From the sequence record NC_061443.1: a stretch of DNA of 64,000 nt, one strand, 5' to 3'. The notes below the pieces were generated by a model that saw nothing but the letters and a program-made list of their open reading frames with translations, searched no databases and was not told where the DNA came from. The position numbers were made by a program, and so were the translations under genes. Position 1 is the stretch's first letter; each line of letters opens with the position of its first letter. Shown in pieces: positions 21,491 through 24,863 of this stretch.

Positions 21491-21780
21491 TAGCCAAATC
21501 TCACGTTAGAACTACCGTTAGAGGCAGTGTCACCACAACTGTTACCATCACCTGCACGTTGCGCAGACTTACCGTTAACACGCACACTCGAACTGGATGT
21601 AGCCTTACCTGTATGGGGTGGCTTATCTTTCTTCCAGTGAGGCATGTACGAGTCACCCTGTCTAACGCTACCCTTTCCATTGACTAGCACGTTAGCAGAT
21701 GCTTGGGCTGCGACAACAGGGAAGTAACCGTTGTGTCCGGTAGACTTGTCTGTGCCTAGTCGAATAGCTTTCTGTCCCAT
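21490..21780 (-). CDS. PAAR-repeat spike tip protein
   Basis: AIRLGTDKSTGH...SANVLVNGKGSVRQGD...H...SSSVRVNGKSAQRAGD...CGD...GSSNVRFG. ATG at 21780 has a GAGGAG RBS (track start is 21804). Confidence 0.85.
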   Translation of the reverse strand: MGQKAIRLGTDKSTGHNGYFPVVAAQASANVLVNGKGSVRQGDSYMPHWKKDKPPHTGKATSSSSVRVNGKSAQRAGDGNSCGDTASNGSSNVRFG

Positions 21781-21802
21781 GATTATCTCCTCTGTTAGAC
21801 AC

Positions 21803-21810
21803 AAATTAGC
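21803..21810 (-). promoter_or_regulatory. GCTAATTT motif, putative late promoter
   Basis: 23 nt upstream of the PAAR ATG and just downstream of a terminator. Confidence 0.5.
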
Positions 21811-21826
21811 TTGTTAAGCCGCAGAA

Positions 21827-21856
21827 ACAAAAACGGGCAGCCTAATGGCCACCCAG
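21827..21856 (-). terminator. intrinsic terminator
   Basis: GGGTGGCC-ATTA-GGCTGCCC followed by GTTTTTGTTT on the minus strand. Confidence 0.65.
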
Positions 21857-21890
21857 TTTCTGTACGCTTGGATTTTGTGTCGTCGCTCCC

Positions 21891-22034
21891 TTACGCCCGA
21901 TGCAAGTGCCCGTCAGCTTTCGCTGGTGAGCCGGAGTGAGTAACAAACAGGTTAACATCATGAGGCCTGTTTGACCATGCAAGCAATAGACCAAACATCG
22001 CTATCGCTAACATCGACACTAAGAACAAAAGCAT
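21891..22034 (-). CDS. small membrane protein, 47 aa (absent from ORF track)
   Basis: AAGGAG 6 nt before ATG 22034; MLLFLVSMLAIAMFGLLLAWSNRPHDVNLFVTHSGSPAKADGHLHRA* with a hydrophobic N-terminus. Confidence 0.6.
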   Translation of the reverse strand: MLLFLVSMLAIAMFGLLLAWSNRPHDVNLFVTHSGSPAKADGHLHRA

Positions 22035-22049
22035 GTTTCGCTCCTTGTG

Positions 22050-23085
22050 TCATACTTTAAGAACTTACGTTTGATCGACGGTTACTTTATTCTGCTCATT
22101 GCCCAACATCACTTGAGTTTCAGAACGTTTCTCTATCTTTACCGCCTACGGTGCGGAAGGCCGCGCACAACACTCACATATCAAGGACACTCGGCGGAAA
22201 AGGGAAGTTCCGAATGCCCTAACAACATGAGTGAAGCGAAGGAGGTCCCGTATCGGTGATCTGCAGGGGTTCATGCACGTTTAACATTCGCTTCTTTGTG
22301 CGTTAAACCCTCTAGGACCCGAATGCCCTGCTAATCATTCCACGAGGATATTGCACACCTTAGTGAACAAGGTTTCAAGCTATGGCAGTACGTCAACAGT
22401 CAACAGCAGCGGACACACTCCACTGCAATCTGTTAAGGGCAGAATGCAGCAGGCTGTGAACAGCTCGGCCGGAATAGGTTTCGCTCGTCGCCCAACTTCA
22501 CTTGAGTATCTCGACCTAGACTTTTACTCTCCACGCGAACTACAAGGAGGTGCTCACGTTTCTGTGGCCTGCGGATGTTTATCACTCTCAGACTCTTTGC
22601 TCCTGTCTGGAAATTAACACGCTGAGTCGTCCGCTGGATGACGTGTTAACTCTCCTCACCTCGTCAGTACGAAAGGCCAGAACAGGTGCCGATGGAATTG
22701 TCATGAAGGAATCCCTGGGGGTCATCGCTTCCCAATGCACACAGGATGATCGCCTATGCACATCAGGCAGCGTCTGCTGCGATACTGCTATTCCCTACTA
22801 GACTGCCCACAATGTTGAGAACACACTCCAACAGTCTACGTGCCTAAGAGGTATATGCCGTGCCTATGTCTGTATTCAGCATGGTTCCATTGCTGGGCCT
22901 TCTGGGCGTCAGCGACAGAGCATATATCTATCACGTGGGTGCCGGGGTTGTCCTCACGATTACAGAGCGTTAACTCAAACCGGCTGGAGGCTTGCATGTT
23001 CAAAGATACACATGCAAGTTTGGTTAACAGCGAAGGCCGCTATGACACTTCGTTGTCAGACATATTGATATTACTATCTGCAATT
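22050..23085 (-). ncRNA. putative large structured non-coding RNA / regulatory region (family unknown)
   Basis: Only ~1 kb gap without a >=60-aa minus-strand ORF in the window; many hairpins, an internal 28-nt imperfect repeat and a downstream terminator. Strand inferred from context. Confidence 0.45.
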
Positions 23086-23099
23086 TTTATTTACAGATT

Positions 23100-24863
23100 T
23101 CAAAATACTTTTCGTTCCACATTCGAATAATAAGTTTCGTATGGGTCAGAGTACAACTCAGGACCACGTTGAGCACGTACAGTCACGTAACCCGTGTGGC
23201 GATTGAATGCAATGATTTCTACTGTAGGCTGTTTAGGCTTGATGGTCGCATAAATCGGAGCGTTCATTGTTGGTTCGTCTGTCTGAATCTTATTTACAGA
23301 TTTCAGAGCATCGCCTGTCAACGTAGGAAGATTAAATCTGATCTCCGCACGTTTCTGACCAAACGCAATCTTGATAGCCCCTGCAGGCATTTCAACGCCG
23401 TTCTGTTTCATGTACGCACCAATGCGACGAGCGATGCCCGTCAACTGGTCGCGAGTACGTGGGTCGAACGTGCCTTCGAAACTGATTGCTTCATTAGGCT
23501 GGCGTACAGACAGATGCAGACCTGTATTGAAGTAGCCTTCGGCAAGCAGACGCATCACTTCCTTCACGATTTCTTTCGTGTTAGATTTGATTGCTGCGAT
23601 ACGCAACTCAGGCACATCAGCTTTCACAGGGTCTTTGAGTTCTGTCTGGTTATCCATGTAGCCGAGTGATACGTGCTTCGCTTTGGCATACGTGTGCTGG
23701 AGAACGCCAGTAGCGCGAATCAGTACCGAGCCAGACTTAGACTGATCGTACAGTTCATCGCTGGTGGTTGTGCTGAACAGGTAATAGTCTGTAGGCACGG
23801 CCATGCGATTGACAGCTTCGACCGCTTTAGTCTGCGCTTCTTTCACTGTCTTGCCGAATACGACACGACTGCGGTTAGGCTGCGAGGCCGATACAGGGAA
23901 GAATGCGCCGTACACAACCTGCACGTTCTTTTGAATAGGCTTATCAGACTGAACTTTGATACCACCTTTAAGAGGTGGCAGTTTCATGCCCACCAGCTTA
24001 CCACTAACGATTGCTTTGTTAGCGACAACAGGTTTCAGACCGGACAGCAGTTTCTGCAACTCAGCGCCGTCAAGAATCTTCTCCAGCGGAACAGCGAGGT
24101 TCTGCGGCAGATAGTGTTTCTTGCGGAACGAGTAGATAACGGTGTCTTTCTTGATCTGCAACGGTGTAGCCATGTTGCGACCAATCTGACCAACAGGCGC
24201 GAATGTGTTGCTCTTGTCGTCTGCGATAGACCCGTACGCTTTAGGGAACTCTGACTGACCGATGATGTTTGCAACACGCTGGTGGCCACGAACGATGAAG
24301 ATAATCTTCGGGTCGTCCTTCATGCGCAGTTCATAACGATCTCGGTTGAGATACGTCATGCTGTACTTGTCGCCTTTTTCCAGCTCAAGGTCGTATTCAT
24401 CGTTGGCATCATCGACAACAACTTTCTTACCCTGATAGGTTGCGTACTGACGAGCAGGCGCGGAGGTCGAAGCGATCTCCATTGCTTTGCCTGTGTTAGA
24501 CAGCGCAACGGCGAAGTCAGCCACGGCAGGCATCAGGTCAACAGCAGAGGCAACCGCGTAGCTACTGCGATGCTCACCGAGATGCAGATGCACGGCAGAG
24601 GACGCAGACATGAATACAGTGTTACCTGTGTCTTCATGTTTACCTGCGAAGTTCATGCCGCTAATGCGTTCGATGATGTTTGCGCTTAACGCAGGGAAAG
24701 AGATATCACTACCAGCAGTGAAGTCGAAGATCTCACCCTGACGCCATGCGTAGGCAACGTTGTTAGAACTAAGTCCGATAAACGCATCGCCGACCTGTTT
24801 AACAGTCATCGGCATAATACTCAAGTCACGAATGACTGAGTTTTGCTTTTGAATAAGATTCAT
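23100..24863 (-). CDS. hypothetical protein (candidate internal head protein; carries shared ~70-aa domain)
   Basis: 587-aa ORF; contains YQGKK...LEKGDKYSM...Y.L..KDDPKIIF segment shared with three other ORFs. Confidence 0.7.
   Translation of the reverse strand: MNLIQKQNSVIRDLSIMPMTVKQVGDAFIGLSSNNVAYAWRQGEIFDFTAGSDISFPALSANIIERISGMNFAGKHEDTGNTVFMSASSAVHLHLGEHRSSYAVASAVDLMPAVADFAVALSNTGKAMEIASTSAPARQYATYQGKKVVVDDANDEYDLELEKGDKYSMTYLNRDRYELRMKDDPKIIFIVRGHQRVANIIGQSEFPKAYGSIADDKSNTFAPVGQIGRNMATPLQIKKDTVIYSFRKKHYLPQNLAVPLEKILDGAELQKLLSGLKPVVANKAIVSGKLVGMKLPPLKGGIKVQSDKPIQKNVQVVYGAFFPVSASQPNRSRVVFGKTVKEAQTKAVEAVNRMAVPTDYYLFSTTTSDELYDQSKSGSVLIRATGVLQHTYAKAKHVSLGYMDNQTELKDPVKADVPELRIAAIKSNTKEIVKEVMRLLAEGYFNTGLHLSVRQPNEAISFEGTFDPRTRDQLTGIARRIGAYMKQNGVEMPAGAIKIAFGQKRAEIRFNLPTLTGDALKSVNKIQTDEPTMNAPIYATIKPKQPTVEIIAFNRHTGYVTVRAQRGPELYSDPYETYYSNVERKVF

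Follow-up and report, generated by a model that had tools for sequence, protein, structure and literature searches.

Twin hairpin tips in a ~1-kb structured RNA of Erwinia and Dickeya jumbo phages as candidate recognition sites

Two 28-nt elements in a non-coding gap of an Erwinia jumbo phage are the tips of homologous bulged hairpins in a ~1-kb RNA, and we consider it somewhat probable that they act as equivalent recognition sites for one partner. The DNA analysed here (the window, 64,000 nt of NC_061443.1) is 100% identical to Erwinia phage pEa_SNUABM_2, a jumbo phage of 265 kb that belongs to the genus Alexandravirus. The repeat pair is carried by a minus-strand gap of ~1.07 kb without a long ORF, which lies downstream of a gene for a 587-aa protein and is followed on its 3' side by a 47-aa ORF and then by the baseplate genes PAAR and gp25 (Table 1). 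An equivalent gap, 1.27-1.46 kb from the stop codon to the PAAR start, is found in 46/46 related phage records. Of the phage records, 57 contain the gene for the 587-aa protein, and in each of them it is the immediate upstream neighbour of the RNA. Searches of PDB and the Atlas found no relatives of the 587-aa protein, and its AlphaFold model (pLDDT 53, pTM 0.30) is too poor to be informative.

Table 1. Positions of the features discussed in the text (coordinates of the window)
Feature	Position	Strand	Remarks
587-aa protein gene	23100-24863	minus	upstream of the gap; KMPT-N is the sole Pfam domain
Promoter-like motif TCTGTAAATA	23088..23097	minus	directly past the stop codon of the upstream gene
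Putative structured non-coding RNA, ~1.05 kb, holding both hairpins	22035..23085	minus	covariation, strand asymmetry
A-rich linker GAGUAAAA	22522..22529	minus	immediately 5' of the m1 hairpin, within the ~50-nt extended repeat
Full m1 hairpin	22475..22518	minus	5-bp covarying outer stem, CG/CG pairs, AGAUA bulge, CUC(A)/(C)GAG helix, apical element
Repeat copy 1 (m1), 28-nt apical element	22483..22510	minus	nearly invariant in 13 Alexandravirus genomes
Linker counterpart GGCGGUAAAGA	around 22137-22147	minus	before m2
Full m2 hairpin	22088..22126	minus	6-bp covarying outer stem, AAA bulge, CUCA/UGAG helix, apical element
Repeat copy 2 (m2), 28-nt apical element	22094..22121	minus	conserved; compensatory changes in the closing helix
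47-52-aa ORF, hydrophobic N-terminus, putative membrane protein	21891..22034	minus	same inferred transcript, downstream
Intrinsic terminator, 9-bp stem and T-run	21824..21855	minus	ends the unit; compensatory changes in the stem (alignment columns 1337-1358)

An earlier, sequence-only reading of this DNA had pointed out a 28-nt repeat with 24/28 identity and a start-to-start distance of 389 nt, and both our reading of the strand and a repeat search agree with it. m1 and m2 are the sole direct-repeat family within 21780-23110, and the chance expectation for such a pair in 1,066 nt is 1.4e-5. Across the 265 kb of the phage genome, a pattern search and a covariance model (R1; E-values of 3e-9 and 5e-8 for the two copies) each recovered only these two. 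Both copies are present in 13/13 Alexandravirus lineages and in the SNUABM_34 group, where the stems are compensated. The sequence of both is strongly constrained in these relatives, and they behave as homologous hairpin-tip modules on an RNA. The repeat unit reaches ~20 nt further upstream, to a common A-rich linker GUAAA(A)G, and its local self-alignment is ~50 nt long in AD1 and SNU3. A profile built around copy 1 also matches, weakly (nhmmer, E ~0.007), a second collinear place before copy 2, which is suggestive of an older and larger domain duplication without establishing one.

The gap was aligned as RNA across 13 Alexandravirus genomes that are 70-100% identical. Invariant blocks lie between variable, compensating stems, and RNAalifold predicted 305 pairs, 82 of them with compensatory double changes. 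The fold energy of the sense strand is -200 kcal/mol vs -148 kcal/mol for the antisense strand, and the sense strand has 427 G.U cells vs 14 A.C cells. The difference in energy and the G.U/A.C asymmetry indicate that the RNA is read in the gene direction. From these comparisons the minus strand appears to carry a structured RNA, and we infer that it is transcribed. Sequencing-run matches to parts of the region are DNA contigs from wastewater and food metagenomes that represent ~92%-identical relatives, and none of them is RNA. Rfam 15 gave no match at the gathering threshold in the window, none that was relevant at E<=10 in the non-coding island and, in six related loci, nothing at E<=1. A cloverleaf was detected neither by ARAGORN nor by the Rfam tRNA models. 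Our literature search found no ncRNA described in these Erwinia/Dickeya jumbo phages, and we regard their ~1-kb structured RNA as previously undescribed. Short CDSs for a 'hypothetical protein' are annotated on either strand inside the structured RNA at loci L004, L005, L006, L008, L009 and L034 (for example pEaSNUABM35_00112, pEaSNUABM16_00118/119, pEaSNUABM17_00113 and pEaSNUABM5_00121). The genomes do not share these CDSs, which probably do not represent genes.

To examine the fold of the tips, we pooled 24 copies, 14 of them distinct, which came from SNUABM_34 and from 11 genomes of Alexandravirus. The hairpin CUCAA-GUGAWG-UUGGG, which had been proposed from the letters of the two copies, showed 0 compensatory changes and a covariation score equal to that of shuffled alignments, and one of its pairs is broken in 8/14 distinct sequences. 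The CUCAA/UUGGG complementarity exists, and RNAfold chooses it for copy 1 folded alone. The comparative data argue against its being the conserved fold. The helix that does covary is an outer one, CYM-W/W-KRG, which closes a 15-17-nt apical element. Three of its four pairs are changed on both sides (CUC/GAG, CCC/GGG, CCA/UGG and CCU/AGG, and also A-U vs U-A), and its signal collapses once the partner strand is slid. Its covariation score is 0.459 vs 0.188 for shuffles, and 0/500 shuffles reach 0.459; the 13 aligned genomes are phylogenetically related, and here as below the shuffle controls overstate independence and are not to be read as probabilities.

Extending the hairpins outwards gave the same result. 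For the full m1 hairpin, 86% of the cells are paired, five pairs are double-changed and the covariation score is reached by 0/500 shuffles, and for the full m2 hairpin 92.5% of the cells are paired and 8/10 pairs are double-changed, again with 0/500 shuffles. A metagenomic relative adds one more compensated change in copy 2, from U-A to C-G. The 5' bulge is AGAUA in copy 1 and AAA or AUA in copy 2, and the outer stem beneath it covaries freely. Above the lower helix, the comparison suggests an irregular segment made of a bulged A and of G.A, U.G, G-C and A.G pairs, topped by a hexaloop WGUYGG, which is AGUUGG at 22492-22497 in m1 and UGUUGG at 22103-22108 in m2. Copy 2 of phage Y3 has Watson-Crick pairs where the Alexandravirus tip reads irregular, and SNUABM_2 and SNUABM_3 have, at loop position 15 of copy 2, an A in place of G, by which U.G becomes U-A; both fit the irregular-pairing reading. 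In the alignment of the copies (A3), C at hexaloop position 4 occurs only alongside A at position 1, in copy 1 of SNUABM_30/phB78 and SNUABM_34 and in copy 2 of SNUABM_17 and SNUABM_1. This suggests that positions 1 and 4 share a contact or interact.

Related hairpins are found in more distant phages. Y3 (Sasquatchvirus) also has a hairpin at each of the aligned positions, in which the bulge is AGA, the 8-bp stem is regular and the hexaloop is AGAUGG or AGUUGG, and the one at the m2 position has a regular stem GUGAC/GUCGC beneath AGUUGG. A second type of hairpin (type B, as distinct from the type A of Alexandravirus), in which an 8-bp stem with an A-N-A bulge carries the hexaloop AGUNGG, occurs in Yoloswag, SNUABM_5, JA11, JA29 and the metagenome contig L044. 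The type-B hairpins sit in a non-coding stretch past the homologue of the 587-aa gene, and TCTGTAAATA precedes each stretch. Taken together, the hairpins of Y3, Yoloswag, SNUABM_5, JA11, JA29 and L044 have 94.8% of cells paired and 7/12 pairs double-changed. The hairpin is present twice in each of them, with the exception of JA11, which has one copy, and both copies within any genome are of the same type. The spacing between copies is 261-393 nt across relatives. Scans of IMG/VR and of metagenomes with the pattern gave no new diversity except one metagenome contig.

The type-B model scored the type-A copies at 8-8.6 bits (E 5-9), and the type-A model did not detect the type-B and Y3 copies. 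The equivalence of the two types therefore rests on position and architecture and not on score. From the aligned position in Y3 and the common architecture, we argue that type-A and type-B tips may be equivalent. The layout common to both consists of a bulge, a lower helix, four further positions and a hexaloop. As a new hairpin motif of the jumbo-phage RNA it can be written as an A-N-A bulge, a stem of 8-9 pairs and a WGUNGG hexaloop. A covarying outer stem, an A-rich 5' bulge and a GG-ending hexaloop at a fixed distance were found throughout, except in m2 of phage Alexandra, which has a 1-nt insertion and AG instead of GG. A scan of 185,579 prokaryote genomes for the tip motif gave 0 matches for type B and one for type A. 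This lone match lies inside a coding sequence, the translation around it resembles what we take to be an AMP-binding-enzyme motif, and it was judged to be due to chance (~4 expected). The lack of a cellular copy in these genomes argues against a borrowed cellular element.

What is conserved in these hairpins is the loop, the irregular upper stem, the distance of the bulge from the loop and the copy number of two. Conservation does not extend to the outer stems, to the spacing or to the greater part of the RNA around the hairpins. This pattern, together with the fact that both copies within a genome are of the same type, leads us to the reading that the tips are equivalent sites for one partner. 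Each hairpin consists, from base to tip, of a covarying outer stem, a 3-5-nt A-rich 5' bulge, a 4-bp helix, an invariant segment whose pairing we read as irregular, and the hexaloop WGUYGG, and the large RNA would present both tips in a fixed geometry. Their single common partner could be a phage or host protein, perhaps a dimer, or the contact could be a symmetric one between RNAs. The earlier proposal of a binding or docking loop thus keeps one of its parts, since the copies are RNA hairpin tips under constraint; the role that it gave them is plausible only, and its fold has to be replaced. Gene conversion or a recent duplication, and not a common ligand, might also explain why the copies within a genome are alike.

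The main rival to a common partner is intramolecular docking, in which each tip contacts a receptor of its own in the same RNA and aids folding, with no external partner. We regard this as a real possibility, though the less probable one. In large RNAs, elements that make tertiary contacts typically have covarying stems with conserved, non-Watson-Crick tips. Other loops of this RNA, such as UGCCCUUAACA, are invariant too, and C-rich single strands could pair with the GG(G) of the hexaloop. However, no column was found to covary with the variable loop positions, where a search for a tertiary partner column gave lineage-specific coincidences only, and Y3, SNUABM_34 and Yoloswag, which keep the hexaloop, have either lost or altered the CCC loop that is the candidate receptor. 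Moreover, two different receptors would not need a joint switch of type in every lineage, and an equivalent site for one partner remains the reading that we prefer. The loop UGCCCUUAACA is exact even in SNUABM_5, JA11 and JA29. The same three phages also have an exact copy of an 11-mer hairpin loop, TGCCCTTAACA, at ~22432-22442 (minus strand), which is located at 4948 in L034, 5061 in L035 and 5334 in L036, where the remaining RNA barely aligns. TGCCCTTAACA is a further candidate functional loop.

The tRNA D-stem and loop, CUC-AGUUGGGA-GAG with G18-G19, resembles the CUC-AGUUGG-GAG of the distant phages. Unlike a tRNA D-arm, the distant-phage loop is 2 nt shorter and there is no cloverleaf. 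A bolder proposal, which we hold to be doubtful, is that the ~1-kb RNA represents a new class in jumbo phages and that the tips serve as its symmetric 'handles'. The handles would either build an RNA-only multimer or clamp a dimeric phage protein in late infection or baseplate assembly, with the D-loop-like AGUNGG hexaloops docking as in the tRNA elbow. RNA-only multimers that form through repeated structural elements have been described for GOLLD and ROOL (10.1101/2024.12.08.627333). Like GOLLD, ROOL, OLE and raiA, the RNA found here is long (~1 kb), highly structured and rich in covarying helices, and it is phage-encoded. Unlike them, it has no Rfam match at the gathering threshold or at E<=10, and it occurs in jumbo phages of Enterobacterales, between the KMPT-N gene and a baseplate module and not beside tRNAs.

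It is improbable, in our view, that the apical element is a kink-turn or k-loop of the box C/D kind, bound by a k-turn protein or fixed by tertiary contacts. A kink-turn is defined by a 3-nt bulge followed by G.A and A.G pairs (PMC4316175). The type-A tip can be laid out in this way, with CYM-W/W-KRG, which covaries, as the C helix 5' of the bulge, AGU as the possible 3-nt bulge and the tandem G.A/A.G formed from the GA of GUGA and of GCGA; its C-box-like GUGAUG and 3' GA occupy the places that they have in a k-turn. Of the 24 pooled type-A copies, 21 have a sequence compatible with this definition (PMC4316175). The departures are m2 of SNUABM_2 and SNUABM_3, which would give A.A, and m2 of Alexandra, in which the first GA differs. 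For the A that the m2 copies of SNUABM_2 and SNUABM_3 have at the 2n position, there is a precedent in nature (PMC3985660). The C-box-like GUGAUG also drew a weak Rfam alignment to archaeal sR17, the best Rfam match, but this is noise (E = 9.8; 12 bits vs a 36-bit threshold). Against the C box RUGAUGA the tip matches at 6/7 positions, and the D box CUGA is absent. Unlike a k-turn, the tip has no NC helix and only a short loop, with 8 nt between the two GA dinucleotides. The aligned m2 copy of Y3 and all copies of the distant phages are regular hairpins without the bulge or the tandem GA. The phage genome gave no match to the L7Ae family (PF01248), a model that matched 8/14 control genomes from a list that names no E. 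coli.

We consider it very unlikely that the copies are paired DNA sites, such as operator, recombination or replication sites for a DNA-binding protein. The sequence-only reading had offered paired operators as an alternative, and two similar sites in a non-coding region would agree with it. But changes in the flanks preserve RNA pairs, including G.U pairs whose counterpart on the opposite strand is A.C, the element lacks the symmetry of a palindrome, the spacing differs among relatives, and the whole island behaves as a structured RNA. The operator alternative is contradicted by this compensation and by the variable spacing, and the RNA-type covariation together with the strand asymmetry effectively excludes DNA operators. 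A protein sponge, also suggested earlier, is unlikely with two sites only; a multimerising RNA, suggested alongside it, is possible. A sponge of the CsrA type was dropped because of the small number of sites, two, and because in most genomes the loops read GGG and not GGA. A CRISPR-repeat or anti-CRISPR RNA mimic of 28 nt was likewise dropped, as there is no array and the two copies are embedded in covarying stems.

The design of the tips may have counterparts among known protein-binding operator hairpins with a 5' bulged purine. In the coat-protein sites of PP7 and MS2 and in HIV TAR, a set number of pairs separates a 5'-strand bulge from a small loop of specific sequence, and the stems are free to covary, a design that the tips would share. 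The tips differ from these in the sequence of the loop and of the bulge, and two copies are embedded in a 1-kb RNA. To our knowledge, few large structured RNAs from phages of Gram-negative bacteria are known. No other surface-like feature of this RNA is as constrained in sequence as the twin tips, and they are kept as a duplicate in at least six genus-level lineages. This constraint and the retention of the duplicate make the tips a natural entry point for tests of partner binding, mutation and multimerisation, and the corrected fold puts probes and mutants on the right helices.

The genome contains 27 copies of the promoter-like motif CTGTAAATA, where 1.4 would be expected, and for 70% of them an ORF starts no more than 120 nt downstream, compared with 17% when the motif is permuted. 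Most copies are 30-120 nt upstream of ORF starts, often just past terminators, and they usually have A/T-rich bases (aAaT) before them, as at 23088-23096 (minus strand). A sigma-70 promoter scan of the island found none. We take CTGTAAATA to be a likely promoter consensus of the phage's own, possibly of the late type, and the RNA may start near the motif listed in Table 1. CTGTAAATA is also found after the homologous gene in Yoloswag, SNUABM_5, JA11 and JA29. A second exact CTGTAAATA with the prefix AAAT lies at 23291-23299 (minus strand), inside the 587-aa gene ~190 nt before the stop codon, and may be an internal promoter or a chance copy. The first 33 nt past the upstream stop (23067-23099, minus strand) are invariant in the 13 Alexandravirus genomes, and Y3 and SNUABM_34 each differ from them by 1 nt. 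Both the promoter motif and a hairpin of 8 bp, AUCUGUAA/UUGCAGAU, fall within these 33 nt.

The small ORF downstream of the RNA had no match in Pfam or PHROG. It is kept in 15/15 genomes, Y3 and SNUABM_34 among them, and its variable columns are distributed 14/4/13 over the three codon positions, which is a coding-like pattern. Its N-terminus is conserved as M-I/L-L-F-x-V-S-L-I-A-I-A-M-L-G, and its 3' half overlaps covarying hairpins.
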